Virus record (IMG/VR): IMGVR_UViG_3300017971_000185
Coordinates: 433,195 to 497,194 of that record
Length of the DNA stretch: 64,000 bases
Direction: 5' to 3' (one strand)
Shown: in pieces, positions 17,749 to 63,466 of the stretch
Layout: each line of letters opens with the position of its first letter
Numbering within the stretch: position 1 is the first letter of the stretch
Notes under the pieces: generated by a model
The model's input: the letters and a program-made list of their open reading frames with translations, nothing else
Told to the model about the DNA's origin: nothing
Databases searched by the model: none
Translations under genes and position numbers: made by a program

Positions 17749-17753
17749 GCTGA

Positions 17754-17786
17754 TAGATAGCCTATCTAAGCCCTCTATCGAGGGCT
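17754..17786 (+). promoter_or_regulatory. Palindrome plus RBS-occluding hairpin
   Basis: TAGATAG-C-CTATCTA followed by AGCCCTC-TATC-GAGGGCT, which abuts ATG 17787. Confidence 0.45.
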
Positions 17787-39597: not shown

Positions 39598-40765
39598 CAA
39601 GAGGCCACCGCGAGAAGTCTTGGAGAGCTTGGTCGCGGAGCTTTTGACGCAACAGCAGATTGCTGGTCGTTATGGTGTGGCTCAGGTAACGGTGAGTCGC
39701 TGGCTGCGGCATTATGGGATTGAGGCGTTGGGTAAGACGGGGAAGATTGATCGGGAGCTGCCGCCTCTGACCGCGATTCAGCAGGCGCTCGTCGTGGGAT
39801 CTTTGTTGGGGGACGGGACGATGAGTGCTCCCAGCTTTCGCACGGCACGGATTGCGGAGGGGCATGCGCTCAAGCAGCGGGAGTACACGGATTGGAAGGC
39901 CGGCATCATGGGATCTTACGTGTCCAATCAGTATGAGGCTACCAAACGGAAGGACGGCAAGACGTACAAGGCGTGGTGGTATTCGTCTCGGACGACGACT
40001 CGGCTGCGTCCTTTTTACGATATGTTTTACGGCAGCGGGCACAAGGTGTTTCCGAAGCAGTTACCTGAGTTGATGACGCCTTTTGTGCTTGCCGTGTGGT
40101 ACATGGATGACGGGAGCCGGTGGGGGAGGTACTACCCACGCATCTCCTACGGCCTGGATGCTCAGGGTCTAGACCGAGCTTTGGAGGCTTTGGCGATGTT
40201 GGGTTTGTCTCCAAAGGTATACACGAGCAAGAAGGGGCGCACGCTTCATTTTCCGGGGCAAGATGATCTTTTCTTTAGCTTGGTCCGAGAGCATGTGCAT
40301 TCGTGTATGGTTTACAAGCTGCCTCTTGAGCGTGTCCGAAAACGTTATGTGTTTGTTGCGGAGAGGCAGGATCGGAGGCCCGAGTTTATTTCTGCCCTGA
40401 CGCCGGAGCGTTTGCGGAAGATGTACGAAGGCGACCTGATGACGGATGGGGAGATTGCTGTTTGTGTTGCCAAGCGCTTTGGTGTTTCTCCGTTTCGTGC
40501 GGAGACTGTGCGGAGAGTCCGAAAGAAGTGGGGTATTCCGGCCATGACGAGTCAGGAACGGAAAGAGAGGAGGCGTGGGACTGCTCCGCGATTGACTGGC
40601 TTGACACGGAAGGTTTTGGAACGTTTGTACGTCGAGGATTTGCTAAGCGACACGGAAATTGGGAGAATCTACGGCGTGAGCAAGACGCCGATTCGGGCAC
40701 GACGCAGGGCATACGGGATTTTGGCCATTTCCAAGGCAGAACGAGCCAGGTTGAGGTTGGGTTGA
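39590..40765 (+). CDS. LAGLIDADG homing endonuclease with HTH modules
   Basis: VVGSLLGDG and LAVWYMDDG; TQQQIAGRYGVAQVTV; AGGAG RBS before ATG 39590. Confidence 0.85.
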   Translation: MRSKRPPREVLESLVAELLTQQQIAGRYGVAQVTVSRWLRHYGIEALGKTGKIDRELPPLTAIQQALVVGSLLGDGTMSAPSFRTARIAEGHALKQREYTDWKAGIMGSYVSNQYEATKRKDGKTYKAWWYSSRTTTRLRPFYDMFYGSGHKVFPKQLPELMTPFVLAVWYMDDGSRWGRYYPRISYGLDAQGLDRALEALAMLGLSPKVYTSKKGRTLHFPGQDDLFFSLVREHVHSCMVYKLPLERVRKRYVFVAERQDRRPEFISALTPERLRKMYEGDLMTDGEIAVCVAKRFGVSPFRAETVRRVRKKWGIPAMTSQERKERRRGTAPRLTGLTRKVLERLYVEDLLSDTEIGRIYGVSKTPIRARRRAYGILAISKAERARLRLG

Positions 40766-40807: not shown

Positions 40808-42055
40808 GTGATGAGCGACGGATCGTTCAAGCGGTTTCTCGGGATTTCCGTTCTGGAGGCAGCGCGTCAGCGTATCTCTTGGACATTTGATGTGTTTGAG
40901 AAGATCTGCGTTTCGTTTTCGGGCGGGAAGGATTCGGGGGTCATGTTGCATCTTGTCATGGACGAAGCCATCAAGCGGGGTCGGAAGGTTCATGTCATGT
41001 TCATCGACTGGGAGGCGCAATACGATCTCACGATCAGCTACGTGCGGGATTGTTTCAAGCTGTATGAGGAGCACATCATTCCCTATTGGGTGTGTCTCCC
41101 GTTGACGACCACGAATGCGGTCAGCGTATACGAGCCCGAGTGGGTTTGTTGGGACCCGGCCAAGAAGGATTTGTGGGTACGTCCGCTGCCTGAGGGTGTG
41201 ATATCAGATCCTCGCGGGTTTCCCTTCTACGAAGACAAGATGACATTCGAGGACTTTGTCCCAGAATTCGGCGAGTGGTTTGGCCAGGATGCCGGCTCCG
41301 CCGCGTGTCTGATTGGTCTTCGGTCTGGGGAGTCGTTGAATCGGTTTCGGACGTTGATTAGCGATCGGAAGGTGACCAAGGATGGGAGGCAGTGGACGAC
41401 CAAGGTAGGGCAGCCGGGGACGTTCAATGTCTACCCGATCTATGATTGGCAAACGAAAGACGTTTGGACATATTACGGGGCGTTTGAGAAGCCGTACAAT
41501 CGGTTGTATGATCGGTTTTACCAGGCTGGGTTGTCGCTGCACCAGATGCGGATTTGCGAGCCCTATGGAGATGAGCAGCGCCGGGGCTTATGGTTGTTTC
41601 ACGTGATCGAGCCACAGACGTGGAGCCGCATCATGGCCCGTGTTGCGGGGGCGAATTCCGGCGCCTTGTATGCTGGCGAGCGTGGAAACATCTTGGGAAA
41701 TCAGAAGGTCACGCTACCTGATGGTCATACGTGGAAATCGTTTACGATGATGTTGCTCGATACGATGCCGCAGGCGACGGCTGAGCATTACAGGAACAAG
41801 TTTGCGGTCTATCTCAAGTGGTACAAGGACCACGAGGGTTTGGACGACGTACCTGATTCCGTGCCTGGTGATACAGGGTCGCGGGATGTGGGGTCTTGGC
41901 GTCGGATGGCGCGTTGCATCTTGAAAAACGACTTCTGGGCAAGTAGTTTGAGTTTCGGTCCTCAGAGAAATTCGGCGTACAAGAAGTATCAAGATCTCAT
42001 GAAACGCAGGCGCAGAGAGTGGGGTATTTTTGCAGAGACGGTGACAGATGAGTAA
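40808..42055 (+). CDS. ibrA: PAPS-reductase-family (DUF3440, IbrA/YbdN-like) protein
   Basis: VSFSGGKDS PP-loop, IGLRSGESLNR, YPIYDW, QMRICEPYGDEQR. Confidence 0.82.
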   Translation: MMSDGSFKRFLGISVLEAARQRISWTFDVFEKICVSFSGGKDSGVMLHLVMDEAIKRGRKVHVMFIDWEAQYDLTISYVRDCFKLYEEHIIPYWVCLPLTTTNAVSVYEPEWVCWDPAKKDLWVRPLPEGVISDPRGFPFYEDKMTFEDFVPEFGEWFGQDAGSAACLIGLRSGESLNRFRTLISDRKVTKDGRQWTTKVGQPGTFNVYPIYDWQTKDVWTYYGAFEKPYNRLYDRFYQAGLSLHQMRICEPYGDEQRRGLWLFHVIEPQTWSRIMARVAGANSGALYAGERGNILGNQKVTLPDGHTWKSFTMMLLDTMPQATAEHYRNKFAVYLKWYKDHEGLDDVPDSVPGDTGSRDVGSWRRMARCILKNDFWASSLSFGPQRNSAYKKYQDLMKRRRREWGIFAETVTDE

Positions 42056-42470
42056 CGTCCAATTGACTCTGATCGAGGGTGACCGGGATCGCGAGTTTTA
42101 CGCGGATATGGGTCCTTTCTTTGCGAGCGCCGAGGTAAGTAAAGAGCTTGGTTCGCCCCTTTATGATGAAGCGGGATCTTTTTGGGTGATTGCCCGGAAG
42201 GCCAAGAAGGTCGTGGGGTGGTCCGTGTTTCGGATTCGGAAGGACGGAGTTGCTGTGTTTGATTGGACCTACGTGGTGCCGGAATGGCGACAGGAGGGCT
42301 TGTGGGAGCGGCTTTACGATTTCAAGATGGACTGGTTGCGTGAGCGCGGGGTGGCGCGCGTGAATACCGCAACCAGTGATGAGGACATGCAGAGGGCGTT
42401 CAAGAAGCGCGGGTGGCGCGTCCGGCGCGAGAAGGGAGCTTGGTTGTTTTACGAGAGGGAGGTGTTCTGA
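42048..42470 (+). CDS. GNAT-family acetyltransferase
   Basis: TYVVPEWRQEGL (V.P..R..G. acetyl-CoA motif), FKKRGW. Confidence 0.7.
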   Translation: MSNVQLTLIEGDRDREFYADMGPFFASAEVSKELGSPLYDEAGSFWVIARKAKKVVGWSVFRIRKDGVAVFDWTYVVPEWRQEGLWERLYDFKMDWLRERGVARVNTATSDEDMQRAFKKRGWRVRREKGAWLFYEREVF

Positions 42471-43120
42471 TGTCTGAGACGCTTCTGGCGCGCGCGGAGG
42501 AGCTTTTTGCTGAGCTAGACGTCATGGGCCTTGAGGAGCGTGTGGAGGCTCTCAATGGTCTACGGAAGCTCCTACATGCTCATAGTCCGTTTCGAGAGGA
42601 GCCTGTGGACTGTCTCCAGTGGGTACCGGAGAAGGGGGTCAGGGCCAACTCTTACAATCCCAACGTCGTGTCTCCCGTGGAGATGGAGCTTTTGGCCCAC
42701 TCGATCAAGTCGGATGGGTACACGCAGCCAATTGTCGGCTTTTATACGGGGGGCGAGTATGAGGTTGTGGATGGGTTTCATCGGAATCGGGTGGGGAAGG
42801 AGGATGGTGAGATTCGGGAGCGCATTCACGGGTACTTGCCGCTGGTAGTGATCAACGAGGAGCGCAGGGGGATCAGGGATCGGATGGCGGCGACAATTCG
42901 TCACAATCGTGCTCGGGGGCGGCACCAAGTCAGCGGGATGGCTGAGATTGTGGTTGAGTTGTCACGACGCAAGTGGAAGGATGAGCGTATTGCGAAGGAG
43001 CTTGGTATGGACCCTGATGAGGTCTTGCGGCTCAAGCAGATTACCGGACTTGCTGAGGCTTTTCGGGATCGAGAGTTTTCCAAGGCGTGGGAGCCTGAGC
43101 TTGACGGAGGCGACACATAA
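42470..43120 (+). CDS. ibrB: ParB/Srx-like (IbrB/YbdM-like) protein
   Basis: ANSYNPN, SIKSDGYTQPI, VVDGFHR, TIRHNRARG; TGATG coupling. Confidence 0.82.
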   Translation: MSETLLARAEELFAELDVMGLEERVEALNGLRKLLHAHSPFREEPVDCLQWVPEKGVRANSYNPNVVSPVEMELLAHSIKSDGYTQPIVGFYTGGEYEVVDGFHRNRVGKEDGEIRERIHGYLPLVVINEERRGIRDRMAATIRHNRARGRHQVSGMAEIVVELSRRKWKDERIAKELGMDPDEVLRLKQITGLAEAFRDREFSKAWEPELDGGDT

Positions 43121-47251: not shown

Positions 47252-47459
47252 TGACGATGTGAGCCAGAAGCCAGCGACCGATGACTTGCACTTCCGCGGT
47301 CAACAGAAGTGCCTCAAGTGTGGCCGTTTCATGCGAAAGACACCCGACTACCAGATCTGGACGTGCCGATGCGGGGGTTGGGCCGTTGGTCTGGCGGACT
47401 TGGAACACATGCAGATTGCGACCGAGGTTCTCTTGGCTCGCGGGTGTGCGTGAGGAATC

Positions 47460-47825
47460 ATGAACAAGACGGACAAGATCCCGACCAACCGACGATCTCC
47501 GGCTGCTACGCTGGCGTATTTGGCTCACGAAGCGTGGGATGGGCATTCCGCTCTGATCGTTCACGGCGGCATCCGAGGTTCGGGGCCCTCAGAGCATCGA
47601 GCGTCGATTCTCCGGTTCTTTTGGAAACAGCGTCGGCCGGGAGCTTTCATCGAGCAACAGTCTCCTGAGGTGCGCCAGCGTTTGCGTGAGCTTAGGTCTG
47701 ACGACATAGCGAACGTTGGTGCGTTTCCAGATTGGTACGCGGCGGACGAATCCCCCGTAGGACGGGTCTGGAAACTGCCGGGTTCCAGAGATCGAAGCGG
47801 AGGGACGTACAATGACGCGTACTGA
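47460..47825 (+). CDS. Hypothetical protein, paralog of 59219-59566
   Basis: About 84% aa identity by manual alignment (RRSPAATLA.LAHEAW..VGAFPDWY). Confidence 0.8.
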   Translation: MNKTDKIPTNRRSPAATLAYLAHEAWDGHSALIVHGGIRGSGPSEHRASILRFFWKQRRPGAFIEQQSPEVRQRLRELRSDDIANVGAFPDWYAADESPVGRVWKLPGSRDRSGGTYNDAY

Positions 47826-49563: not shown

Positions 49564-50532
49564 ATGAAAACACCAAGTCTCAAGAGACTCGATTGGATGG
49601 CTTTCTTCGAATCGGAGTTGGGCATCTGCAATGGAGACCCGGACAATCCGGGTTATCCGAGGATGACGGAGGACGGCTATCTGGTGATCAGCGGTCCTTT
49701 CCTGAATCGTCTGGGACGCAATCAGTACGAGCGCATGGTGGAGACGGGCGAGCTGCCCGCAAAGGGGAATGCGATCCACATTCAGCGTGGAGCCCGGCTT
49801 GCTAACGTTGCTGAGGAAGCCATTGCTGCGGCTGATCCCAAGGAAGCCGGGAAGATCTTGGAGGATGCCCGTAGTAAGCGCGACAAAGAGGCTGAGGAGG
49901 GGAAGAAAAAGACAAGAGCCCGGTCGAGTGTCAAGTATCCAGAGGAGAAGGTTCACGATGCGCTGACTCGCACGTTCATCGATGACGCGATGTACGGATC
50001 GGTCTTGACGAGCACAGTTTACACAGCCCCTTCCATTCACGGCGCCGTCACTACGCGTATGGGCATGTCTCTTCATCCTGTGGAGCTACACAACATGACC
50101 AACACGCGCATGGCGTCTGATAGTGATGCGGTGGACCGTTCTCGCGACTTCGCGCGCTCTAAACCGGTTCGCTACGCGCTCATTCGCACTGTGGGAACCT
50201 TTGATGCTTTTCGGGCTGAGAAGAACCATGTCGATGCTGAGCGTCTCAAGGATTTCTTTGCCGTCTATCTGACGATGTGCGACAACGCGACATCGAATGC
50301 GCGCGGAACCTTCGGCCTTCGGGAGTTGATTGTGGTCAAGCACAAGAGCCCCACAGGCAGCATGAGTCTGATCGATTTCAAGGATCGGCTCAAGGTGCGT
50401 ATGCGGAATGGGGAGTGCCCGCGCTCGTTTGCCGACATCGAGCTTGGCTATGATGACAAGAACCTCCCTCCGGGGGCTGAGATCATCCGACTGGCTGAGC
50501 TACGGGGGAACTTGGATTGGCTGGTTAGCTGA
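49564..50532 (+). CDS. cas7: Type I-C Cas7 (Csd2), divergent
   Basis: CNGDPDNPGYPRMTEDG, FIDDAMYGSV, GAVTTRMGMSLHPV..TNTR. Confidence 0.85.
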   Translation: MKTPSLKRLDWMAFFESELGICNGDPDNPGYPRMTEDGYLVISGPFLNRLGRNQYERMVETGELPAKGNAIHIQRGARLANVAEEAIAAADPKEAGKILEDARSKRDKEAEEGKKKTRARSSVKYPEEKVHDALTRTFIDDAMYGSVLTSTVYTAPSIHGAVTTRMGMSLHPVELHNMTNTRMASDSDAVDRSRDFARSKPVRYALIRTVGTFDAFRAEKNHVDAERLKDFFAVYLTMCDNATSNARGTFGLRELIVVKHKSPTGSMSLIDFKDRLKVRMRNGECPRSFADIELGYDDKNLPPGAEIIRLAELRGNLDWLVS

Positions 50533-51197
50533 TGCCAAGTGTTTACTTTCAGGGCGACTTCGCCCACTTTTCCAACCCGCTGCTGAAGGCCGAGGGGACT
50601 ACCTTTCCCGGCCCTCCGCCTTCGGCTCTCCGCGGAGCCATTGAAAACATCCTGTTCAAGATGGGCGTCTACGTGGATGTCCGCCGCATCACGTACCACC
50701 GGCCGATTCGGACGATGAACTTCAAGACGAACGGCCTCAAACATGCGGTAGGCATGTCGCAGATCACGCTCCCGGATGCCCATCAGATGAACAACACGTT
50801 GCTCTACGACGTGGCCTATACAGTGGACTTCGATCTGCGCTTGTGTTGGCGTGACCGAGAGACCCAAGAGATCGTTAAGTTCGATGAGAGGGTGCTGGAG
50901 AGCCAGGATCTTCGGAAGTACATGGCGATGTACGAGAAGTATATCCGCCTGGGTAAGTGTCAGCACCCGCCTTGGCTGGGGTCGAAATTCTGCGAAGCTC
51001 TGTTCAGGGCACCCCGGCCCGAGGACACGCCGATTCAGGAGTCGCGGGACTTGGGGATGATGACGCACGGCATCGAGTACCGTAAGGCGGGGAACATCAC
51101 CCATGTCTTTCATCCGGTGATGAGAGACGGGGTTGTAGAGGTGGACTCGTTCTTCGATGTTCTCAAGGCCCGCTACGGGTTGAGGGCGGGTCAATGA
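50532..51197 (+). CDS. cas5: Type I-C Cas5 (Cas5c/Cas5d)
   Basis: GDFAHFSNP..PPPSALRGAIENI, LLYDVAY, PPWLG, DLGMM, PVMRDGVVEV. Confidence 0.88.
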   Translation: MPSVYFQGDFAHFSNPLLKAEGTTFPGPPPSALRGAIENILFKMGVYVDVRRITYHRPIRTMNFKTNGLKHAVGMSQITLPDAHQMNNTLLYDVAYTVDFDLRLCWRDRETQEIVKFDERVLESQDLRKYMAMYEKYIRLGKCQHPPWLGSKFCEALFRAPRPEDTPIQESRDLGMMTHGIEYRKAGNITHVFHPVMRDGVVEVDSFFDVLKARYGLRAGQ

Positions 51198-52870
51198 TTC
51201 GTCTCGACACACTCGTTGCCTTGGGGCAACGGGAAAAACTCGGCTATCTGCTCGATGACCAGCGGCCCTATGGGGAAGTTGTGTTGGATGCGGAGGGCCA
51301 CATCATCACTGTTCGCAAATCCTCTGGGGCGGTTCCCGTCCCAGACTTGCCCAATCGCACCAACTCCGAGTTGCGCATTGGGATGTATGTCGAGAACGAG
51401 ATGTATCTCTTTGGGACGACTCCGAAGGAGTACAAGGACCCCACGAAGCCTAGGAAAGCGCTGGAGCACGCTGCTGAAGCCTATGCCAAGATCGCCAAGG
51501 AAGTGCGGATCAAAGCCACACAGGCGGTCGCGCGGTTCTACGACTTGTCTCTAAGGGGCAAGCACAAGGTGCCGAAGGGGTGGCGATTTCAGCGGTATGT
51601 GTTTGTCTATAAGGACCAATACCTGCCCAGCGTTCCGCAGCTTCGCCCTGTGATTGAGAAATTTGTAGATGCCATTCCTAGCGTGGACAGCATCGAAAGG
51701 CAGTGCTTGATTACGGGAGAGTGGGTGCGGTGTCAGACGACGCCCCACGCAAACACCAAAGGACTTAGCTCCAACTCCAGTGGAGCGTCCTTTGTGAGTT
51801 TCAATGGGACAAGTCAGTACCAGGGGCGTCCCGAGGATCGGTTCTTGACGGCTCCCATCGCCCCTGGTGTATCTCGACTCATGACTTCAGCGCTTTCGTG
51901 GTTGAGCCGGAATCGTAGAATCCAACTCACGCCCGATCTCAATGTCTTGGTCTGGACTGAGGAAGGCCACCCGCTAGAGGCTCTCGGGCCGAAGTTGTTT
52001 GCGCCAGAGAAGGAGTCCCGAGAACAGCGAACGAAACGCGAAGAGGAAGCCGTTGGTGACCTCTTCGCTCATCCTGAGTGGGATGAGAGCACGGAGGCCG
52101 CCTACCTCCTGACAACGACTGGGAATATGGGTCGCTTCGCGGTCCGTGAGTGGGAGGAAACGACTGTCGGCAGGCTCTCTGCCAATCTGAGGCGGTTCGT
52201 TCAGGACTTCACAGTCGAGATCACAGTTGGGGAAGAGGAAGTCCAAGCTCGTCACACGTCTCTCTCGCGGCTGTACGCAGCGTGGTCCGATAGGCAGGTG
52301 GTACACCGTGACATCCTTGCCCTAGCCAACATGGCGCTCAAAGGAATGCCGGTACCAGAGTGTGCGTGGCCCTCCGGTGCGCCAGAAACCATTATCCAGA
52401 AAGCCATCTTTCAAGCGTATAGGAAACGGAACATGGAGAATCCAGGAAATTTCACAGCGGACATCAGCGTAGACGGGCAGTCGAATGCTTACCGGATGGG
52501 ACGGGCTTGTGCCGTCATGGAGGACGCTCGGTACAGCGCGAACAGAGCCAACAGTCGGGGGGTGATCGCGCACAATGTGGTTGACAACCCGTCTGTTGGG
52601 TTTCACCGGGCGATGCAGTCCATCATCCACCATTTGCCCAAGCGCCCAGGCAATCAGTACGCTGAGAGTCTCAGCGTGTTCACCAGCGGGATCGAAATTC
52701 CTGATCGGTTTGCTGTTCGGGAGCAGAACGAGTTTTGGCTGGGGTATCTCTACGAGCAGGGCCGTCAAAGCTACTTGTATAGGCTGGGGCGCGATGCCAA
52801 GAGCGCCAAGAAGAGCGAGCAGGGCGCGGATGGCCAGGACGTAGACGCCAGGGCATTGCTTGATGATTGA
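51194..52870 (+). CDS. cas8c: Type I-C Cas8c (Csd1)
   Basis: CLITG..PH..KG..ASFVSFN, TSALSWL, VLVW, AYRMGR..FWLGY. Confidence 0.82.
   Translation: MIRLDTLVALGQREKLGYLLDDQRPYGEVVLDAEGHIITVRKSSGAVPVPDLPNRTNSELRIGMYVENEMYLFGTTPKEYKDPTKPRKALEHAAEAYAKIAKEVRIKATQAVARFYDLSLRGKHKVPKGWRFQRYVFVYKDQYLPSVPQLRPVIEKFVDAIPSVDSIERQCLITGEWVRCQTTPHANTKGLSSNSSGASFVSFNGTSQYQGRPEDRFLTAPIAPGVSRLMTSALSWLSRNRRIQLTPDLNVLVWTEEGHPLEALGPKLFAPEKESREQRTKREEEAVGDLFAHPEWDESTEAAYLLTTTGNMGRFAVREWEETTVGRLSANLRRFVQDFTVEITVGEEEVQARHTSLSRLYAAWSDRQVVHRDILALANMALKGMPVPECAWPSGAPETIIQKAIFQAYRKRNMENPGNFTADISVDGQSNAYRMGRACAVMEDARYSANRANSRGVIAHNVVDNPSVGFHRAMQSIIHHLPKRPGNQYAESLSVFTSGIEIPDRFAVREQNEFWLGYLYEQGRQSYLYRLGRDAKSAKKSEQGADGQDVDARALLDD
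52433..52870 (+). CDS. cas11: Putative Cas11c by internal translation of cas8c
   Basis: AGGA..CGGA RBS and in-frame ATG just before the SNAYRMGR segment, where type I-C Cas11 normally begins. Confidence 0.55.
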   Translation: MENPGNFTADISVDGQSNAYRMGRACAVMEDARYSANRANSRGVIAHNVVDNPSVGFHRAMQSIIHHLPKRPGNQYAESLSVFTSGIEIPDRFAVREQNEFWLGYLYEQGRQSYLYRLGRDAKSAKKSEQGADGQDVDARALLDD

Positions 52871-55070
52871 CGTGTGTCAATTCGTCACCGGCCTCTCCTC
52901 GGACAGAGGAGAGGCCGAATCTTCTGGCCCCGACTCTCTGTGGGAGCATCAGCAGTTTGGGTTCCTTGATGTAGTAGACCACATCCTGAATCGGAAGGAG
53001 AAGCAAGTTGGGCTGTCTGGCCAGCCAGGGTGTGGTAAGACGCGCCTTACGACGTATATTGCGGCTTACTTGGCCAAGTCTCCGGTGTCTCCTATCACTA
53101 GAGTAGTCGTTGTGGTCCCGACCCAGATCATTCGGGACCAGTACAGAGGACAGAAGTCTGTAGTCCGGTTTGGGGCTGTTGAGGACGTAGCTGGGGAGGG
53201 CCCGAACAACAAAGCTGTCATCTCGGTCCCTGACATTGACTTAGGGAAGCTGATAGACCCTATGGTGGCTGGTCCAAAATATCTCGTGGACCACGTCACA
53301 GGTGCCGGCAAGCCGAGAGTCATCCTTGCCACGACTATGGACACCTTTCGCAGAGCCCTAGATTGCATTGGCGACATGAGCCATGTGTTAGTCGTTCTCG
53401 ATGAGGCGCATCGGTTCCCTGTAGGAGAATTCAAAGCATGGGCAAAGGCCAGAGTCGCTTGTGAGGAGAAGAGTGCCACTATCCTTGCCACGACGGCTAC
53501 GATGTACCGAGCGGACGGGCTTCCGATTTGTCCTGGTGCGTACATACACCAAATTCCCCGGATCAAACTGATTGAGGCTGGCCTCTGCCCAAGTCGCTTT
53601 CCTGTAAAGGTTGTTCTCCTTCCCTCCGTCGCTAAGACAGCGACGGAGGTAGTGGATGTCCGTGTGAAAGGGGAAGGAACGGAAGGAACCCTTGTAGAGC
53701 TTCTGACCGATGACGATCTCCGTTTTGGGGTGCGGCATTGGGTTGGTCTGGGATGCCCGTTTGGCCTCATGCGATGCCAAACCCAGGCGTTGACCAAGCG
53801 CTTGAAAGAAATTGTCGAGGAGGAGTGTCCCCACCTGAAGGCTGAGGAGGTGGGGCGCCCCGTTGTGGATCTTTCGGGCAAAGAGGTAGACAAGATGTGG
53901 CCCGTTGTGGATCTTTCGGGTTCCAAGGTGAACAAGGCGTTGGAGGCCCAGATTGCGCATGATGGCCGTGTGCGGCATGCCAATGAGATACGGACACAGC
54001 TAGTTGTGGGCATTCGACGTGTTGAGTGTGGTTTCGACTGGCCTCCGGTATCTCATGTCTTCAACTTCGGGCTCATTTCGTCTGAGACCCTCCTGGCCCA
54101 GCTTCGAGGACGGGGTTGGCGTTCGAAGACGAGATACGAGGGCTACCCTGAGCGGTTTCGGGATGAGGCGTGGCTCATCATGTTTGTGCCGACTGTGTCA
54201 GAGGAAGCTCGAACGGAGTTTCTGAGGAGCCCTGATCATCTCAAGCTGTTGATGATCATCGCGGCGACCACGGTCAATGAAGAGGCAGGTACTCTGCTGT
54301 CGTTCATCCATGATGAGATCCAGAAGGGGTTGTCGCGGTATGTGCGTGGGTACCGGGACCAGTTGCAGGTCATCCGTATCCTGGGGGCCCTCAACCCTGA
54401 GCCCAGAGAGATGGACGAAATACGGGCTGATCTTGGAAAGATCGAGACTCGGCTCGGAGGCGATGTGTCCGTTTCGGACTACATCAGAGAGATTGTCTTA
54501 GAGTCGCGGGACGAGAAGAAGCGTGGGGTCGTGAAGAGAAAGTGGTCGAGACGACGGAAGCTCGGAGCCCTGATTCTTTTGTTGGGGCAGAAGGGTCAGT
54601 CCAAGAAAGAGACCGCGCGGCTGATTCGGGAGCTTCTGGACAAGAAGAAATCGGTTACGCTCGTGGAGAGTCCTGAGCAGGTTTCAGATGAGGTTCGCTC
54701 CGTGCTTGCAGATGCTCTCAATCAGTTGGTTGAGAAGCATGGCGACATTGTTACCTTCACGGACACATACGAGGAGATGGCGGCCACCATGAACACCGAT
54801 GTGGACACTATCCGTCGCATGCAGCGAGAGGTGGACCGTCTGACACAATTCAAGCCTCGCAGCTATCAGGTTGCTGTTGAGGCTGTTAGCCAAGAGTTGG
54901 TTCACTGCGGAAGGCGGTGGAAGGTTCTCCAGGACCTTTCCGGGCCTCTTGGCTTGGACCCAGGGACCTACACAATGCGTCATCTCGATCGCGATCTACG
55001 ACATCAGGTGTTGAAAGGCCAGCCAGAGGACATCAACAGTTTGAGAGACTTGAGGCATGCGTTTCGGTAA
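52860..55070 (+). CDS. SF2 (DEAH) helicase without HD nuclease domain
   Basis: LWEHQ, GQPGCGKT, LDEAH, TAT, VECGFDWP, QLRGRGWR; motif I starts ~50 aa from the N-terminus. Confidence 0.8.
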   Translation: MMIDVCQFVTGLSSDRGEAESSGPDSLWEHQQFGFLDVVDHILNRKEKQVGLSGQPGCGKTRLTTYIAAYLAKSPVSPITRVVVVVPTQIIRDQYRGQKSVVRFGAVEDVAGEGPNNKAVISVPDIDLGKLIDPMVAGPKYLVDHVTGAGKPRVILATTMDTFRRALDCIGDMSHVLVVLDEAHRFPVGEFKAWAKARVACEEKSATILATTATMYRADGLPICPGAYIHQIPRIKLIEAGLCPSRFPVKVVLLPSVAKTATEVVDVRVKGEGTEGTLVELLTDDDLRFGVRHWVGLGCPFGLMRCQTQALTKRLKEIVEEECPHLKAEEVGRPVVDLSGKEVDKMWPVVDLSGSKVNKALEAQIAHDGRVRHANEIRTQLVVGIRRVECGFDWPPVSHVFNFGLISSETLLAQLRGRGWRSKTRYEGYPERFRDEAWLIMFVPTVSEEARTEFLRSPDHLKLLMIIAATTVNEEAGTLLSFIHDEIQKGLSRYVRGYRDQLQVIRILGALNPEPREMDEIRADLGKIETRLGGDVSVSDYIREIVLESRDEKKRGVVKRKWSRRRKLGALILLLGQKGQSKKETARLIRELLDKKKSVTLVESPEQVSDEVRSVLADALNQLVEKHGDIVTFTDTYEEMAATMNTDVDTIRRMQREVDRLTQFKPRSYQVAVEAVSQELVHCGRRWKVLQDLSGPLGLDPGTYTMRHLDRDLRHQVLKGQPEDINSLRDLRHAFR

Positions 55071-55689
55071 GGCCAAGGAAGTTTCGCGGGAGAACAATCT
55101 CCTTCACGTGATGAACAGCTATTTGCTGTTCTCGGGCGGCAAGATGCGAGTCGATTGGCTGGAGGTGCCGGGCGAAGGCTCTCCGATGGTGAGAATCCTT
55201 CGATCCTATCTCGTACCGGGCGTGTCCAAGCTCGTTTGTTTGGATCGTAACGCCGAGTACGTCCGGGAGGGCGAGGAGCAATACGGGAGTGAGATCTGCG
55301 AGTGGGTTTTGGCCGATGACTTGTTTGCCGAGCTAGCTAATTCACCGGACAAGTACGCTAACGTAGGGGTTCTGAATGTCGATCTCTACAACAGCCTTCG
55401 TCTGCTCGAATTCCCCGAACAGATGCGGATCGTCATGGAGTTTGCCACACGCCAGTTCTGGGCGATCGGGGCCTTCATGGTGTTTCTGAACTACTCGATG
55501 CGAGGCAGTGTTCGCGAGGAGTTTGCTCAAGACGTGATCAAGACTCTGGAGCCTTATCTAGATTTGTCACAGGTTGATCTCACTGATGAGGGCTACCTGT
55601 ACAAAGGAGGAACGCCTGACCAACCAGGCAACCGGAGATTGAATCTTCGGATACACCTAGGACCAACAAGGACACCGAACAATGAGTAA
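55057..55689 (+). CDS. Putative class I SAM-dependent methyltransferase-like protein
   Basis: Rossmann-like order WLEVPGEGS (motif I), LVCLDRN (acidic end of beta2), VLNVDLY, VFLNYS. Confidence 0.45.
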   Translation: MRFGKAKEVSRENNLLHVMNSYLLFSGGKMRVDWLEVPGEGSPMVRILRSYLVPGVSKLVCLDRNAEYVREGEEQYGSEICEWVLADDLFAELANSPDKYANVGVLNVDLYNSLRLLEFPEQMRIVMEFATRQFWAIGAFMVFLNYSMRGSVREEFAQDVIKTLEPYLDLSQVDLTDEGYLYKGGTPDQPGNRRLNLRIHLGPTRTPNNE

Positions 55690-56076: not shown

Positions 56077-56229
56077 CCTGAGGTTTCCTTCTGCGGGGCG
56101 ATTGCGAGTACAACGAGCTTTCTGACATTCGCAGAGTAGAACACGTCAGCGCTGTTCAGGCGCGCGATTTCACCCCTCGTGCATAACCTGCGATTACGAG
56201 CAATGATTTCAGCAGGTTCTAAGCCAAGG

Positions 56230-56558
56230 GTTTCCGCCCTGTTACGGGGCGGTTGCGATTACAAGGAAGAGCCGCTGGACCTGAGCGCAGCCACCAAGCT
56301 GTTTCCGCCCTGTTACGGGGCGGTTGCGATTACAAGAGCCGTGAACGAGCAGGAATGCGCCCAAATCCTGGCCGAGTTTCCGCCCTGTTACGGGGCGGTT
56401 GCGATTACAAGGCCATGAGCTTGGCGCTCATTGATTCGAGGGCCGCTGCGTTTCCGCCCTGTTACGGGGCGGTTGCGATTACAAGATCGAGATTCTGCGG
56501 TGGACACGCGCCAGCATGTTGAGTTTCCGCCCTGTTACGGGGCGGTTGCGATTACAAG
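56230..56558 (+). CRISPR. Block A: 5 identical 36-nt repeats
   Basis: GTTTCCGCCCTGTTACGGGGCGGTTGCGATTACAAG at 56230, 56301, 56376, 56450, 56523; spacers 35, 39, 38, 37 nt. Confidence 0.97.
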
Positions 56559-56592
56559 GATTGCACGGCCTACGAGGGGTTTCCGCTCTCTC

Positions 56593-56836
56593 TTCCGTCT
56601 CCGGCCTCGAATCGAGGAGGCGGTTTCGATTGCAACGCACGCGGATGCGAAACTCCGTCTTCTCCAAGTCTGTCTCCGCGGGAGGCGGTTTCGATTGCAA
56701 CATGTCGTGCGTCGAGACATCCAGAGTGGGTTCCGTCTCCGCGGGGAGGCGTTTCGATTGCAACACCAACGGCGGTCAGGGAGTTGGAGCATGGGATTGC
56801 GTTCCGTCTCCGCGGGGAGACGGTTTCGATTGCAGT
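56593..56836 (+). CRISPR. Block B1: 4 variant repeats
   Basis: Consensus GTTCCGTCTCCGCGGGGAG(G/A)CGGTTTCGATTGCAAC at about 56593, 56668, 56730, 56801. Confidence 0.85.
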
Positions 56837-56863
56837 ATGTTGGTGGTGGAATCCTCGCCGAGT

Positions 56864-56893
56864 AGAGCCCCCTCAAACGAGGGGGCTCTTTTT
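56864..56893 (+). terminator. Intrinsic terminator inside the array
   Basis: AGAGCCCCCTC-AAAC-GAGGGGGCTCT (11-bp stem) followed by TTTT. Confidence 0.85.
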
Positions 56894-56939
56894 CCCAGTC
56901 TTCGATTACAACTACGCCATTCGGCCCCAAGGCGATCTC

Positions 56940-57345
56940 GTTTCCGCCCTCCTGCGGAGCGGTTGCGATTACAACGCTCTCACCGGCCTCAGTGTTCTCT
57001 ACTCCTTCTGGTTTCCGCTCCTCTGCGGAGCGGTTGCGATTACAACTACCGGACCGACAGCTACACCAATCTGATCAGAAAATCGAGCACCGTCGCATCG
57101 GACAGTGGTTTCCGCTCCTCTGCGGAGCGGTTGCGATTACAACTAATCGGTTTCCACCGCCGAGGGAGAACCCCGCACGTTTCCGCCCTCCTGCGGGGCG
57201 GTTGCGGTTACAACGTGACGGTCACAGGTCGAATTTCGTCTGCCCGGTCCGCCCTCCTGCGGGGCGGTTGCGATTACAACGCTACCGAGAGATCGCGGAA
57301 CGGTTGGGTGTTTCCGCCCTCCTGCGGGGCGGTTGCGATTACAAC
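56940..57345 (+). CRISPR. Block C: 6 repeats
   Basis: GTTTCCGC(C/T)C..TGCGG(G/A)GCGGTTGCGATTACAAC at 56940, 57011, 57108, 57179, 57247, 57310. Confidence 0.93.
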
Positions 57346-57376
57346 CTGCACGCTCAGCCGCCCACGAGGGTACGAG

Positions 57377-57841
57377 GTTCGTCTCCGAGGGAGACGGTTT
57401 CGATTGCAACCAGATGTGGGATGCAGTGTCCGTGTCCGCCTCTCACGGAGGCGGTTTCGATTGCAATTTCGTTGGCTCTCACTGATCGGTTTTTCGTGTT
57501 CCGTCTCCGAGGAGGCGGTTTCGATTGCAACCCCACTGACCTCAGCGCCATACGACGGTTCCGTTCCGTCTCCGAGGAGACGGTTTCGATTGCAACCTCC
57601 ACCCACGTCGTGTAGGTGCCGCCCCGTAGAGGGGCGGTTTCGATTATAACACGCGGGACTCGGGAAGAAGTTGAACCCGGATCGTTGGGTCCGCCCTTTT
57701 GGGCGGTTTCGATTACAACAATCAAGGTGGTACGTCATTTCGGGAGAGGGAGCGATTGCGATTACAACCGCATGATGTCCTGGATGGGCTTGATCGTTGA
57801 GGTTTCCGCTCTCTGCGCTACGGAGGGCGGTTGCGATCAAC
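57377..57841 (+). CRISPR. Block B2 plus hybrid/degenerate repeats
   Basis: B-type at 57377, 57434, 57498, 57563; hybrids at 57616, 57689; degenerate at about 57746 and 57802. Confidence 0.85.
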
Positions 57842-58904: not shown

Positions 58905-59222
58905 ATGGAATGCACGTGCGAAATAGAGTGTTGTGACGGAGAGCCTATCCTCGACTACGAGGCTGTCCGGCTCACGGTGCAGGAGAGCCCTCTATGCGAT
59001 GAGTGCGGTGAGACGATTCCGAAGGGAGCGTTTGCGGAGCGCGTGACGGGGTTGTGCGAGGGCGAGTTTGTCTGCTGGTACACCTGCGAGGTATGCTTGC
59101 GGATCAGAGACGATCTCATGGGCCGGTGTTTCTGCCATGGCACGATGCGAGATGACCTGCGAAGCTGCCTTGGTGTAGACTACGTTACGGGCGAGGTTGA
59201 TGAGGAATGGGAGGCGGCATGA
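58905..59222 (+). CDS. Cys-rich zinc-finger protein
   Basis: CDECGETIPKG..TCEVC. Confidence 0.65.
   Translation: MECTCEIECCDGEPILDYEAVRLTVQESPLCDECGETIPKGAFAERVTGLCEGEFVCWYTCEVCLRIRDDLMGRCFCHGTMRDDLRSCLGVDYVTGEVDEEWEAA
59160..59211 (+). repeat. 52-nt direct repeat, right copy
   Basis: Matches 47200-47251 with 3 mismatches. Confidence 0.9.
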
Positions 59223-59566
59223 ACAAGATGGATGAGATCCCAACCAGCCGACGATCCCCAGCCGCCACCCTGGCACACCTAGCCCATGAAGCATGGGAGG
59301 GGCACTCGGCCCTGATCGTTCACGGCGGCATCCGAGGGACGGCGCCTCCGTCAGAGCATCGGGCGCGGATACTCCGCTCGTTTTGGAAGCAGCGTCGGCC
59401 GGGAGCGTTCATCGAGCAGCAGCCACCAGGGGTACGCCAGCGTTTGCGGAACCTCCGATCCGAAGACATCGCCAATGTCGGCGCATTCCCGGATTGGTAC
59501 GCTGAGGAAGAACCCCCAGTAGGCCGCGTCTGGAAACTGCCGGGTTTCCGAGACGACATCCTCTAG
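59219..59566 (+). CDS. Hypothetical protein, paralog of 47460-47825
   Basis: ATGA overlap; about 84% aa identity to the left copy. Confidence 0.8.
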   Translation: MNKMDEIPTSRRSPAATLAHLAHEAWEGHSALIVHGGIRGTAPPSEHRARILRSFWKQRRPGAFIEQQPPGVRQRLRNLRSEDIANVGAFPDWYAEEEPPVGRVWKLPGFRDDIL

Positions 59567-60103: not shown

Positions 60104-61216
60104 GTGACCAAGGAAAGCAAATTCAAGCAACGCGTGCGTGATCGTATGGAGAGGACGGGCGAATCCTACGCTACTGCTCGACGCAACGAGAATGAGGCTG
60201 CGGGTTTGATCGAGGAGATGAAGGCAGTGGATGCTGAGCTTAGTGAGCTAGAGAAAGCTCAGCTAGAGCGCGAGAAGGTCAATCGTCAGTGGGTGAAGGA
60301 CAACCCAGGGCTCAAGGTTGTGACGCTGACGTTGACGCATAACGAGCACGGGACGCCGACGATTCACGTGTCGGGTCCTGAGCTTACGTCCATCCAGATC
60401 ACCCAGCCGCCTGACGTATACGTGGAAGCCATCCGACAGGCGTACCAGGACAACGAGTGGGCGAAGAACCCGAAGGACGATCTTGGTGATCTTCCCGAGT
60501 GTCGTTTGGAGGACTCCAAGCGCAAAGAGGACTTTGTCTACGAAAGCGGACCCGCGCCCGAGGGCACGATTCATGAGGACTTTGATGCGTTGGTGGCGGC
60601 GCTGTACAAGGTGAAGGGCCGTGTCATGTCTGTGGATCATCCGAACCATGGGCTTGTCGGGTTTGTGGAAACCGAGACGGACAAGTACCACTGGATACGG
60701 ATCAAGCCGACTCTTGCCTGGACTGAAACGGTCGCTTGGGAACATCTAGAGCTTTGGGGCCTGATGCAGACGCCGCGAGGGCGTTGCAAGGCCGCGGGTC
60801 TTTTCAGCCAGGAAGAGATGCTGGCGAAGGTGTCGTCGGCTCTAGAGGGCTGGTGGAAGAGTGCCTCTCCGTTTCCGACCAATCCTGATCCTGCGGAGAT
60901 CGTTGCTCCGCTTTCTGGAGAAGCGTTGGCTGATGTGTTTGCTCACGTCGAGAAATTCGATGTTTCGGTTGAGGCGATTGTGATGTCGGCGCGCAGTTTC
61001 CATGAGGTTTGTAAGCACGCAAGCGACAGCATCCGCTTGGAAACTCGTGCCCGGCTGATGAAGAAAGGGCTAATGGGTCGCCTGTGGGATGCTCTCGTGA
61101 TCACGACCCGAGAGATCGATGAGGATGAGATATGTTTCTTGGGTCGGGATCCCGAGGGGAAGTGGGTGTGTCACTCGCTTCGTGTGATTCGGCCATCTGC
61201 GCAGGGTTCAGAGTGA
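60104..61216 (+). CDS. Protein with C-terminal partial MCP paralog
   Basis: N-terminal KFKQRVRDRMERTGESYATARR; 60902-61111 is 28/70 identical, ungapped, to MCP 37323-37532. Confidence 0.8.
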   Translation: MTKESKFKQRVRDRMERTGESYATARRNENEAAGLIEEMKAVDAELSELEKAQLEREKVNRQWVKDNPGLKVVTLTLTHNEHGTPTIHVSGPELTSIQITQPPDVYVEAIRQAYQDNEWAKNPKDDLGDLPECRLEDSKRKEDFVYESGPAPEGTIHEDFDALVAALYKVKGRVMSVDHPNHGLVGFVETETDKYHWIRIKPTLAWTETVAWEHLELWGLMQTPRGRCKAAGLFSQEEMLAKVSSALEGWWKSASPFPTNPDPAEIVAPLSGEALADVFAHVEKFDVSVEAIVMSARSFHEVCKHASDSIRLETRARLMKKGLMGRLWDALVITTREIDEDEICFLGRDPEGKWVCHSLRVIRPSAQGSE

Positions 61217-63466
61217 CCTTCCGTGTTTTCGGAAGGCGATCCCGAGATTCCTTGCCCTGAGCTTGTCGTCTGCCCAGCACAGCCTGCATTCGCTACACGT
61301 CAACCCGGACAAGGTCTGCGCCGGGCAAGGGGCCAGCGACCAACCCGTCCCAGGTACCTGGAATACCTGACCGTCGGGAGATAGAGCAGGCACAATGACG
61401 GCAGGCGCGTACCCCATTGACACGACCCTCTTGATGTCTTCCACCGTGTCACAGGAGCCAAGGACGCTCGCCCGCCGAAACGCGGCGCGTGGGATCCACG
61501 CTGCCGAGTGAGTGTACGTCCACAGAGCCGTTCCCCTGTTCGCCAACCACCAGTCCGCGAGCCCAGCAACCATTTTTGCCTGACCGACCGTCGTCACGTC
61601 TCCACCACCATCGTGTAGACATAAGGCGAGCCCTTGGGGATCGGGAAATTTCTCCTTCGCAAGTTTGGCCTCAGCCGCGATAATTTCGTCGGCCGTCCAG
61701 TTTCCGTCTTTCGCTATTCGCTCAAGCCGCTTTGAGTTGCAAGGGTGTGCGTAGCATCCGTTGTCGCGCAGGGGGCAACTTGGCGGGCATGTTTGTTTGA
61801 TGGGAATCGAGGTTGAGATGATTTGAGAGATCGGCTTGGAGCCTCGGATCGGTGCATGTATTGCGACGGGTGGTTGGCGCGTTTTTGAAGAGATCCCGTG
61901 TTTGCGGAGATGGCAGATCACAGTTGATGGGGACACTTCCAGAGCTTGAGCGATGGTTTGATTGGTTGCTCCCTCTGCTACCATCTGTCGAAGAACATCC
62001 GCATCGAGGGGCTTGGGTTTCGGCCGCTCGATCCCATGTTTGCGGAGATGGTACGCCACAGTTGATGGGGACACTTCCAGAGCCCGAGCGATGGTCCGAT
62101 TGGTTGCTCCCTCTGCCACCATTTGTCGAAGAACATCCGCATCGAGCTTTCGAGCGGTGGTTTGGTTGGGTTTCTCTGCCACAACCTTCCGCTCGATCCC
62201 GTGTTTGCGGAGATGGTACGCCACAGTTGATGGGGACACTTTCAGAGCCCGCGCGATGGCCTGATCGGTTGCTCCCTCTGCTACCATCTGTTGAAGAACG
62301 TCCGCATCGAGAGTTTTCTGTTTCGGCCGCTCGATCCCGTGTTTGCGGAGATGGTACGCCACAGTTGATGGGGACACTTTCAGAGCCCGCGCGATGGCCT
62401 GATCGGTTGCTCCCTCCATCGTCATTTGTCGAAGAACATCCGCATCGAGGGGCTTGGGTTTTGGCCGCTTGATCCCGTGCTTGTGGAGATGGTACGCCAC
62501 AGTCGAGATAGACACTTTCAGAGCCCGAGCGATGGTCCGATTGGTTGCTCCCTCCATCACCATTTGTCGAAGAACATTCGCTTCTATGGTGGTTTTGCAG
62601 CGCTGCGATGGTGGAGGGGCGGCCTTCCAAAGCTCCTGTTGCCATTCGGAGAAACTGTCGAAATCGCGTCCGTTAGTGTAAGCCCATCGTTTGAGGAGAC
62701 GGCTGCGTTTGGGTTCGGGCGTCTTGCACCAAGCGATGTAATTCAGCAGCCATCGAAAGTTGGTCAGGGTTTTCGGAATCTCTGCGGGAAACCTTCGTGG
62801 GAAGATTTGTCGGAGGATTCTCTGAAGAGTCTCTTGTTTCCAGGCTCTAGTCTCGATCTGGAAAGGCGCGTACCACCCTGCCTTTTTTCCAGCAGACATC
62901 CAGGCTTGGATTTGAGCCTTGGTCTGGTCGGCCGATGCGTATTCTCTGCGGTACGATTTAGAGAAAAAATGCTTTCCGTCCGGCAGGCTTTCCAGCAAGC
63001 GTTTCTGTTTCGGTTCGATTTTTCCGAGAACGTATCGCCTGCGCCATGTTTCTAGCCACCATTTCCACTTTTTCTGGGAGCGTAGTTCCCAAAGAGATTG
63101 AGACTTTGTTAGGTGCTTGAGTCGGGTGATCCTGTCAAGCCATCGGGCGTGTGGGTATTTGCCGTCATTGTGGACTCGGTTGTTCCAGGTCCACCCGTCT
63201 AAGCTCTCAAGCAGCCGTATGCGATCTTGTGTTAGCTCTCCGTTGCGGTACATTCGGCGCTGATAAGCTATCCATTTCCCTATTGGTCGTCCGTCTCTTC
63301 GATCCGTGTAGCGGATTTGGTCGGCGCCACCACGTTCTTCCGATTCGGCAAGCACTTCGTAGTACGTCCCCATCCACTGGGCTGTCGAAAACGGTTGTGA
63401 TCGCTTCCGCCATCTTCGAAGGTCCCTCATCCAGTCTTTTTCGACGCACTGATCTCGGCTTGGCAT
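61208..63466 (-). CDS. Fusion: helicase-associated (HA)-like repeats + 5 HTH repeats + Cys-rich gp88-like domain
   Basis: IGKWIAYQRRMY..RIRLLESLDGWTW; 5x LDADVLRQM..HLRKHGI; TCPPSCPL..GCYA, LHDGGGD, WTYTH, CPAQT..CSECRLC. Confidence 0.75.
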   Translation of the reverse strand: MPSRDQCVEKDWMRDLRRWRKRSQPFSTAQWMGTYYEVLAESEERGGADQIRYTDRRDGRPIGKWIAYQRRMYRNGELTQDRIRLLESLDGWTWNNRVHNDGKYPHARWLDRITRLKHLTKSQSLWELRSQKKWKWWLETWRRRYVLGKIEPKQKRLLESLPDGKHFFSKSYRREYASADQTKAQIQAWMSAGKKAGWYAPFQIETRAWKQETLQRILRQIFPRRFPAEIPKTLTNFRWLLNYIAWCKTPEPKRSRLLKRWAYTNGRDFDSFSEWQQELWKAAPPPSQRCKTTIEANVLRQMVMEGATNRTIARALKVSISTVAYHLHKHGIKRPKPKPLDADVLRQMTMEGATDQAIARALKVSPSTVAYHLRKHGIERPKQKTLDADVLQQMVAEGATDQAIARALKVSPSTVAYHLRKHGIERKVVAEKPNQTTARKLDADVLRQMVAEGATNRTIARALEVSPSTVAYHLRKHGIERPKPKPLDADVLRQMVAEGATNQTIAQALEVSPSTVICHLRKHGISSKTRQPPVAIHAPIRGSKPISQIISTSIPIKQTCPPSCPLRDNGCYAHPCNSKRLERIAKDGNWTADEIIAAEAKLAKEKFPDPQGLALCLHDGGGDVTTVGQAKMVAGLADWWLANRGTALWTYTHSAAWIPRAAFRRASVLGSCDTVEDIKRVVSMGYAPAVIVPALSPDGQVFQVPGTGWSLAPCPAQTLSGLTCSECRLCWADDKLRARNLGIAFRKHGRSL
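61884..62587 (-). repeat. Five tandem HTH-coding repeats (period 138 nt, one 165 nt)
   Basis: Near-identical units, e.g. CATCCGCATCGAG recurring at about 61997, 62135, 62299, 62437. Confidence 0.92.

Follow-up and report, generated by a model that had tools for sequence, protein, structure and literature searches.

We analysed the final 64 kb (64,000 nucleotides, hereafter the window) of the 497,194-bp virus record IMGVR_UViG_3300017971_000185, which is 94% complete. The window contains an operon of CRISPR-associated (cas) genes (CRISPR, short palindromic repeats that are clustered and regularly interspaced) in the order cas7-cas5-cas8c-superfamily 2 (SF2) helicase-P0001-small basic open reading frame (ORF), followed by a CRISPR array (Table 1). 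P0001 is the protein encoded at 55057-55689; other P numbers denote proteins, and L numbers related loci, used for comparison. Structure prediction indicates that P0001 is almost certainly a divergent protein of the class I (Rossmann) methyltransferase fold. It is very probably a dedicated subunit of the helicase in this CRISPR system.

The P0001 gene and its family

The P0001 ORF runs from ATG to TAA on the + strand and encodes 210 amino acids. An initial reading of the DNA letters (the sequence-only reading) had noted that both ends of the ORF overlap its neighbours, and this is borne out: the start overlaps by 14 nucleotides the upstream 736-amino-acid ORF, which ends at 55070, and the stop overlaps by 8 nucleotides a downstream 112-amino-acid ORF with its ATG at 55682. 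An exhaustive HMMER search, in which 1.84 billion representatives were scanned, returned 46 representatives at E≤1e-3, the closest non-self relative having an E-value of 2e-31 and 43% identity. Because these homologues are mostly 200-220 amino acids long and align end to end, we conclude that 55057-55689 is a real gene. The N-terminal methionine and the first helix are kept throughout the relatives.

All relatives discussed here were taken from the exhaustive search and not from a word-indexed homology search, which returned the query alone for P0001 and six proteins for a profile of alignment A1. A1 comprises 42 sequences of the P0001 family, and residue conservation counts below refer to it. 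Judged by its sequences, the family is unnamed and divergent, since curated sequence models fail on P0001 and barely match its relatives. The Pfam model Methyltransf_25 weakly matched 5 of the 42 relatives (best E-value 1.2e-4), and NCBIfam and PHROGs matched none of them. A search of PDB sequences with the A1 profile gave only matches at E=1.5, to methyltransferases in the region of beta2-beta3, and tblastn of P0001 against INPHARED phages gave no match. One Joint Genome Institute source labels a P0001 relative in terms much like 'Class I SAM-dependent methyltransferase' (SAM, S-adenosylmethionine).

Predicted fold

The AlphaFold2 model of P0001 built with the 42 sequences of A1 has a predicted local distance difference test (pLDDT) score of 89.1 and a predicted template modelling (pTM) score of 0.88. 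A single-sequence model (pLDDT 36) was discarded, and only the A1-based model was used. The model begins with an N-terminal helix (residues 5-19), followed by beta1-alphaA-beta2-alphaB-beta3-alphaC-beta4-alphaD-beta5-alphaE-beta6-beta7. This seven-strand core of alternating strands and helices, ending in a beta6-beta7 hairpin, is the layout of class I methyltransferases. The protein corresponds to a catalytic core only, of 210 amino acids and without a DNA-recognition domain. The three motifs picked out in the sequence-only reading are present and lie where that reading had placed them: LEVPGEG (residues 35-41) runs from the end of beta1 (33-36) into the loop ahead of helix A, CLD (61-63) ends beta2 (59-63), and NVDLY (107-111) lies at the end of beta4 (103-110).

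Foldseek searches of the PDB with this model returned at least 500 matches at E≤1e-3, and those listed are all methyltransferases, headed by MnmM/YtqB (7e-7). The best AFDB cluster is annotated 'Class I SAM-dependent methyltransferase' (TM 0.72, 26% identity), and Swiss-Prot models, AFDB clusters, viral models and the ESM Atlas concur on a methyltransferase fold. The class I fold that had been proposed from motif order is therefore upheld by both the model and the structural searches. The list of structural Z scores is flat, with RNA, DNA, protein and small-molecule methyltransferases scoring alike, and the substrate of P0001 can therefore not be read from its fold.

Partnership with a phage helicase

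Related loci were found with a helicase alignment, A2. Except in L025, every P0001 relative with a readable neighbourhood is encoded immediately downstream of a helicase gene homologous to that of the window. In the window, L004, L010, L011, L019, L027, L030, L032 and L034 the methyltransferase gene follows the helicase gene immediately and usually overlaps it. P0001 has a fixed partner in a phage ResIII-type SF2 helicase, with which it is co-inherited, and the genetic link between the two is obligate. No methyltransferase-like neighbour was detected, even at E≤50, beside the more distant helicases of L023, L024 and L026, and the partnership is therefore limited to part of the helicase family. 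In L010, L019 and L027, the pair of helicase and methyltransferase genes has LAGLIDADG or intein genes directly upstream.

The sequence-only reading described the gene as lying inside the cas operon. This holds in that Cas7, Cas5 and Cas8c are encoded upstream and the array lies downstream; the description is incomplete, as the P0001 gene is the partner of the helicase and the pair is also found without cas genes.

The two proteins also occur as a natural fusion. P0027 (1160 amino acids) carries a helicase at its N-terminus, homologous to the window helicase (E-value 5e-18), and a P0001-like domain at residues 968-1113. P0027 is encoded in L009, and its close sister is a helicase cut by a contig end in L022 (7254-10043); more than one phage therefore probably has the fusion.

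Structure prediction of the complex between the window helicase and P0001 gave an ipSAE interface score of 0.84 (0.83, 0.84 and 0.85 in individual runs), and the best of three controls scored 0.00. Of 80 solved complexes, 58 reached the mark used for ipSAE, as did 2 of 110 mismatched pairs; because the alignments were our own, this calibration is approximate. The runs have at least 84% of their contacts in common, and the pLDDT of the partner is at least 81. P0001 is predicted to dock on the N-terminal RecA1 part of the helicase, with the free edge of beta7 and a single face of its own N-terminal helix as contact surfaces. The predicted interface comprises 120-133 contacts, in which helicase strand 118-124 pairs with beta7 of P0001 (198-203), and it also includes the end of alphaD and residues 167-183. 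The predicted docking strand region of the helicase (segment 103-124) is very variable in the alignment of helicases. Residues K7, R11, D109 and N145 of P0001, together with residues 33-90 (the SAM-side strands beta1-beta3), fall outside the predicted interface, and a presumed active site formed by the former would therefore stay open.

A single recruitment to CRISPR

In a maximum-likelihood tree of the P0001 family, the cas-linked members fall in one clade of 12 members (support 94/86). A prediction of this tree was tested with P0018, P0028 and P0032, which all proved to be encoded in Cas7-Cas5-Cas8c-helicase operons. Among members with readable contexts, all six in the clade (6/6) are cas-linked and all five outside it (5/5) are cas-free. 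Residue 194 is arginine in 12 of 12 clade members and methionine in 30 of 30 others.

The helicase tree agrees with this division. Six cas-linked helicases are split off by one branch (93/92; 0 of 500 label shuffles were as low), and the helicase and methyltransferase trees contain the same three sister pairs. Because both trees separate the cas-linked members and pair them in the same way, we conclude that Cascade captured the helicase and methyltransferase genes once and that they have been co-inherited from then on. In the cas-free locus L019, the pair is found among genes for DnaB, two N6/N4 DNA methylases and an NAD ligase, which suggests that the ancestral role of the pair was in phage DNA metabolism. 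Among the cas-linked loci, L030 has an array of 59 repeats. A separate observation in L030 is an AcrVA2-like Pfam match at 17852-18802, ~7 kb downstream of the locus of the helicase-type I-C variant.

Conserved residues and putative active site

Four residues of P0001, K7, R11, D109 and N145, are unchanged in all 42 sequences of A1 (42/42), which are ~25% identical to one another. Near-invariant positions are D33, W34, E36, G39, P43, G61, G104, F129 and Y182. At motif I, an acidic residue at position 36 (E or D) is kept in 41/42 and G39 in 38/42, with the consensus ELxGxxAPT rather than GxGxG. The motif II position, residue 63 at the end of beta2, is acidic in 37/42 (aspartate in 33, glutamate in 4); the others have asparagine (4) or serine (1). 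D109, the motif IV residue at the end of beta4, lies in the pattern [FYW]-D-[ST], being preceded by an aromatic residue in 37/42 and followed by serine or threonine in 36/42.

In the model, N145 ends beta5, and K7 and R11 lie on the N-terminal helix ahead of beta1. Invariant polar residues at the ends of beta4 and beta5, combined with a lysine- and arginine-bearing helix, would be the pattern expected of an active enzyme. These putative active-site residues are retained in cas-linked and cas-free members alike.

The CRISPR-Cas operon

From cas7 to the small basic gene, successive ORFs are linked by overlaps of 1-14 nucleotides. The cas7 gene is also first in the related operons of L004, L011, L030, L032 and L034. 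Cas8c additionally matches NCBIfam TIGR01863 (E-value 3e-34), with a score under the curated cut-off. Neither Cas1, Cas2 nor Cas3_HD was found in the 497-kb, 94%-complete genome, and its lone Cas4-like match is sub-threshold and lies 64 kb away. At least 11 DNA runs, from sediment and seawater, contained the phage, and the locus was found in DNA metagenomes only.

Table 1. Coordinates of the operon and array in the window, and arrangement of the helicase-methyltransferase pair in related loci
Feature	Location	Strand	Basis
Cas7, type I-C-like backbone subunit	49564..50532	+	Pfam Cas_Cas7, E 7e-37
Cas5 (Cas5d-like)	50532..51197	+	Pfam Cas_Cas5d, E 6.5e-11; 1-nucleotide overlap with cas7
Cas8c/Csd1 large subunit	51194..52870	+	Pfam Cas_Csd1, E 1.4e-42
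SF2 helicase (ResIII/DEAD) at the place of Cas3	52860..55070	+	Pfam ResIII, DEAD, Helicase_C
P0001, predicted class I methyltransferase-fold protein, 210 amino acids	55057..55689	+	AlphaFold2 model, fold searches, family conservation
Small basic Lys/Ala-rich protein, 112 amino acids	55682..56020	+	ORF; last gene ahead of the array
CRISPR array, ~23 repeats of ~36 nucleotides	56078..57770	+	
Pair with Cascade genes	L004, L011-13, L030, L032-35		
Upstream ORF cut by contig end, matching the helicase C-terminus	L005, L006, L008		
Pair without any cas gene	L010, L019-21, L027/L029		
Methyltransferase gene 3.5 kb downstream of helicase	L025		

The window helicase matches the Pfam families ResIII (1.8e-10), DEAD (1e-7) and Helicase_C (3e-4), and its PHROG matches are named 'DNA helicase'. 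Pfam revealed no Cas3 family and no HD domain in it. Helicase alignments A2 and A3 show no variation in the Walker A, DExH, TAT and QxxGRxxR motifs. Its true start is likely the ATG at 52863; the Atlas and the protein collection carry a helicase of 735 amino acids that begins at residue 2 of the 736-amino-acid ORF. A word-indexed search with the A2 profile returned just two proteins.

The 112-amino-acid protein ends in a basic tail rich in lysine and alanine, and had no family match and no usable structural match in a search of the Atlas. In L005 and L007, the gene of the homologue P0003 is followed by a comparable Lys/Ala-rich ORF; in L034, repeats coding for Lys/Ala adjoin the array. This basic protein may be a third accessory component, perhaps one that binds DNA.

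The first five repeats of the array are identical (56230-56558) and are separated by spacers of 35-39 nucleotides. Later repeats retain the 3' handle (TTGCGATTACAAC/G or TTTCGATTGCAAC) and vary in their stems, where changes compensate on both arms (CCGCCC...GGGCGG, CCGTCTCC...GGAGACGG, CCGCTCC...GGAGCGG). Repeat spacing is irregular, ranging from 49 to 151 nucleotides. The same stem variation and irregular spacing were seen in the array of the distant relative L034 (11003-13760). An Rfam scan around the locus gave nothing credible.

The whole CRISPR-Cas cassette is flanked by a direct repeat of ~340 nucleotides (79-80% identity), with copies at 47452-47791 and 59211-59553 that lie 11.76 kb apart. 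Each copy encodes a paralogous ORF of ~120 amino acids and unassigned function (47460-47825 and 59207-59566). These repeats may be the borders of an inserted or duplicated cassette.

Relation to known systems

A phage-encoded variant of type I-C in which a helicase substitutes for Cas3 was published in 2020 (PMC7162821); it has Cas5d-like, Cas7 and Cas8c proteins, lacks Cas1, Cas2 and Cas6, and carries an unidentified SF2 helicase for Cas3 (PMC7162821). The window locus fits this variant in its phage-borne Cas7-Cas5d-Cas8c genes, adjacent array, non-Cas3 helicase and lack of Cas1 and Cas2. In the accessible part of the text of PMC7162821 the word 'methyltransferase' is absent, and a later preprint, in the part available, names the variant merely 'helicase-associated' and does not mention a methyltransferase. 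Full-text literature searches for an association of a methyltransferase with this variant returned nothing relevant. Thus the methyltransferase-fold gene, the fusion, the predicted complex and the cas-free ancestors appear to be undescribed in the searchable literature.

Compared with canonical type I-C systems, the window system shares the Cas5d, Cas7 and Cas8c genes and their order, as well as a hairpin repeat with a conserved 3' handle. It differs in that an unrelated helicase and P0001 replace the HD nuclease-helicase Cas3, and in that there is no Cas1, Cas2 or Cas4 module. Type IV-A systems with DinG are described, in the accessible parts of two reports, as mobile, free of adaptation genes, built of a Cascade-like complex and a helicase, and non-nucleolytic (PMC11519345; 10.1101/2023.06.23.546257). 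The window system is alike in being borne by a mobile element and in combining Cascade with a helicase, without adaptation genes or a nuclease. The two differ in their helicases, SF2 DinG in type IV-A and a ResIII-type helicase here, and in their effectors, which are Csf proteins and Cas5/7/8c, respectively. We know of no methyltransferase-fold subunit in type IV-A.

Type III and ISP restriction-modification enzymes couple a ResIII-family SF2 translocase to a class I methyltransferase, as two subunits or within one polypeptide. The coupling of helicase and methyltransferase described here, including the fusion P0027, is similar. Unlike type III/ISP enzymes, the helicase, P0001 and P0027 matched no nuclease or target-recognition domain (TRD) family. 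P0001 also has the motif [FYW]-D-[ST] instead of (D/N)PP(Y/F), and lacks a Pfam N6_N4_Mtase or N6_Mtase match. In the cas-linked clade, specificity would have to come from Cascade.

A further likeness concerns the putative active site. In RlmJ, K18 and D164 are both essential, and the combination of a motif X lysine with a motif IV aspartate is shared with T4 Dam and the EcoRV methylase (PMC3814359). In sequence pattern, P0001 resembles this group of 'motif X Lys + motif IV Asp/Asn' enzymes (RlmJ, T4 Dam, M.TaqI, EcoRV) in having K7 on a helix before beta1 and D109 at the end of beta4. It differs from RlmJ in that no PP follows the aspartate (N-V-D-L-Y; N-[FYW]-D-[ST]-x in the family) and in having no helical subdomain. 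An hhalign comparison of A1 with E. coli RlmJ placed D109 on the D of DPPY with a probability of 0.2, which is non-significant. Since hhalign comparisons with both E. coli RlmJ and RsmJ were non-significant, we do not claim membership of P0001 in an RlmJ/DPPY family.

Proposed mechanism and alternatives

As to function, the sequence-only reading had offered methylation of target DNA, of CRISPR RNA (crRNA) or of a protein, or else SAM binding as a sensor. We propose that Cascade locates its target through the crRNA and would recruit the helicase-methyltransferase heterodimer at the usual docking place of Cas3. The helicase would then expose nucleic acid or translocate along it. P0001 is probably an active SAM-dependent methyltransferase, with a putative active site formed by D109, N145 and K7/R11, the latter on an N-terminal 'motif X-like' helix, and would modify the exposed nucleic acid, most likely DNA. 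Interference would thus be non-nucleolytic, proceeding by marking and/or displacement and not by cutting. As a whole, this chain, from the recruitment of the heterodimer to methylation by P0001, is a tentative proposal to which we assign a little less than an even chance. In a stronger form, the pair would act as a natural 'writer' guided by crRNA: once loaded by Cascade at a matching site, it would methylate the DNA, the displaced strand or a transcript there, possibly processively during helicase translocation. We regard this stronger form as doubtful.

Several points weigh against the proposal. We infer the recruitment of the pair by Cascade from operon structure only, and the helicase-P0001 complex is a prediction. 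Conservation gives mixed signals on SAM binding by P0001. E36, G39, the acidic residue 63 and the invariant D109 favor it; the second glycine of motif I (G41), kept in only 19/42, which makes the motif degenerate, speaks against it, as does the failure of P0001 to match Pfam. The aspartate of motif III is found in only 14/42. P0001 itself had no match in Pfam, NCBIfam, PHROG or PADLOC at E≤1, and no significant match in a search of PDB sequences. The likeness to amino-methyltransferases with a motif X lysine and a motif IV aspartate is one of pattern only, and is best taken as a lead. The spacers had no self-match in the phage's own 497-kb genome and no match in INPHARED, and two spacers searched against IMG/VR matched only arrays of the same phage. 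Finally, copies of the pair are found next to replication genes where cas genes are absent, so that its main activity may be unrelated to CRISPR targets.

Methyltransferase-fold proteins can also serve as non-catalytic cofactors of helicases. In yeast, the methyltransferase Bud23 and the DEAH helicase Dhr1 act together, for the most part without a need for Bud23 catalysis; this pair acts in eukaryotic ribosome biogenesis and Bud23 has no sequence relation to P0001. We take it as a precedent for a non-catalytic role only. P0001 might similarly stabilize, activate or position the helicase, or bridge it to Cascade, with SAM perhaps still bound. The degenerate motif I, the poorly conserved motif III and the failure of curated methyltransferase models to recognize P0001 would all fit such a role, as would the large and confidently predicted interface and the clade-marking switch between arginine and methionine at residue 194, which is located in beta7 beside that interface. 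Yet K7, R11, D109 and N145 are invariant among highly divergent sequences, occupy methyltransferase active-site positions (the ends of beta4 and beta5 and the N-terminal helix) and lie outside the predicted helicase interface, and pseudo-enzymes usually lose such residues. We consider a non-catalytic role unlikely, if still the main alternative. The same residues bear on the idea that P0001 is a sensor, binding SAM or S-adenosylhomocysteine and gating the helicase according to metabolic or infection state. The partial retention of SAM-side features (E36, G39 and the acidic residue 63) and the tight predicted coupling to an ATPase are compatible with sensing; the invariant substrate-side D109 and N145, plus K7/R11, would be unnecessary for mere SAM binding, and we judge a sensor to be very improbable.

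Alternatively, the substrate may be RNA, with the pair acting on crRNA, phage or host transcripts, tRNA or rRNA, and the helicase serving as a remodeller of RNA or R-loops. The best Foldseek matches are small RNA methyltransferases (MnmM/YtqB, fibrillarin, TrmB, RlmJ, NSUN5 and Trm5), METTL16 and RlmJ are among the longest structural alignments, and neighbors in the ESM Atlas include TRM5/TYW2 and RlmJ. However, the helicase is of the ResIII DNA-translocase type with 'DNA helicase' PHROG matches, the cas-free copies lie among genes for DNA replication and modification, and type I Cascades are known to bind double-stranded DNA, so that an RNA substrate seems improbable, though less so than a sensor. 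Least credible is that P0001 is an ordinary self-protection methylase of the phage that happens to sit between the cas genes and the array. Orphan methylases are numerous in phage genomes, and N6_N4 methylases are indeed encoded nearby in L019 and L034. However, six operons have a methyltransferase-fold protein at this same position, despite identities to P0001 of only ~24-43%, the trees of the methyltransferases and of the helicases agree with each other, the two proteins are also found fused, the reading frames overlap, a complex with the helicase is confidently predicted, and P0001 is without a DNA-recognition domain. The helicase partnership, together with the evidence for a single recruitment, essentially excludes such a passenger.

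Other features of the window

Several further genes were noted outside the cassette. A 752-amino-acid protein encoded on the - strand (61208-63466) carries a helicase-associated (HA) domain at its N-terminus, DUF7227 at its C-terminus and ~5 tandem helix-turn-helix units of the LuxR/GerE type, each of ~45 amino acids. At 40808-43120, consecutive genes encode a PAPS-reductase/DUF3440 protein, a GNAT acetyltransferase and a ParB-N-like protein, and a LAGLIDADG homing endonuclease gene lies just upstream (39371-40765). The region 14281-22319 encodes a 1155-amino-acid ORF with a weak, sub-threshold Pfam intein-splicing match and a 1510-amino-acid ORF with a polyA-polymerase/CCA-adding head domain. 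The very large ORFs, the intein, the CCA/polyA-polymerase domain and the LAGLIDADG genes fit the gene content of a huge phage.

Implications

The type I-C variant without a nuclease became known in 2020, and to our knowledge no mechanism of interference has been proposed for it beyond 'a helicase'. The analyses presented here go beyond the ORF from which they started, and point to an unannotated methyltransferase-fold subunit of the helicase that replaces Cas3; the system was known, and this component and its origin are apparently new. Besides the helicase, the variant would thereby have another dedicated subunit, which is conserved, co-evolves and is probably helicase-bound, and which has an enzyme fold and an intact-looking active site. 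The question of how Cascade achieves interference without Cas3 becomes testable in the form of whether the system methylates.

If P0001 is active, it would be a natural RNA-guided methyltransferase, compact at 210 amino acids and relevant to programmable epigenetic marking. If the pair were indeed a crRNA-guided writer, it would be the first CRISPR-Cas effector to leave a chemical mark, as opposed to acting by cleavage, binding or transposition, and a giant phage could use it to silence, mark or sensitize the DNA of its host or of rival phages. If P0001 is inactive, it would be a clear prokaryotic case in which a methyltransferase fold has been put to new use as a cofactor for a helicase. The analysis also defines a previously unnamed phage helicase-methyltransferase module, which was recruited to CRISPR once.

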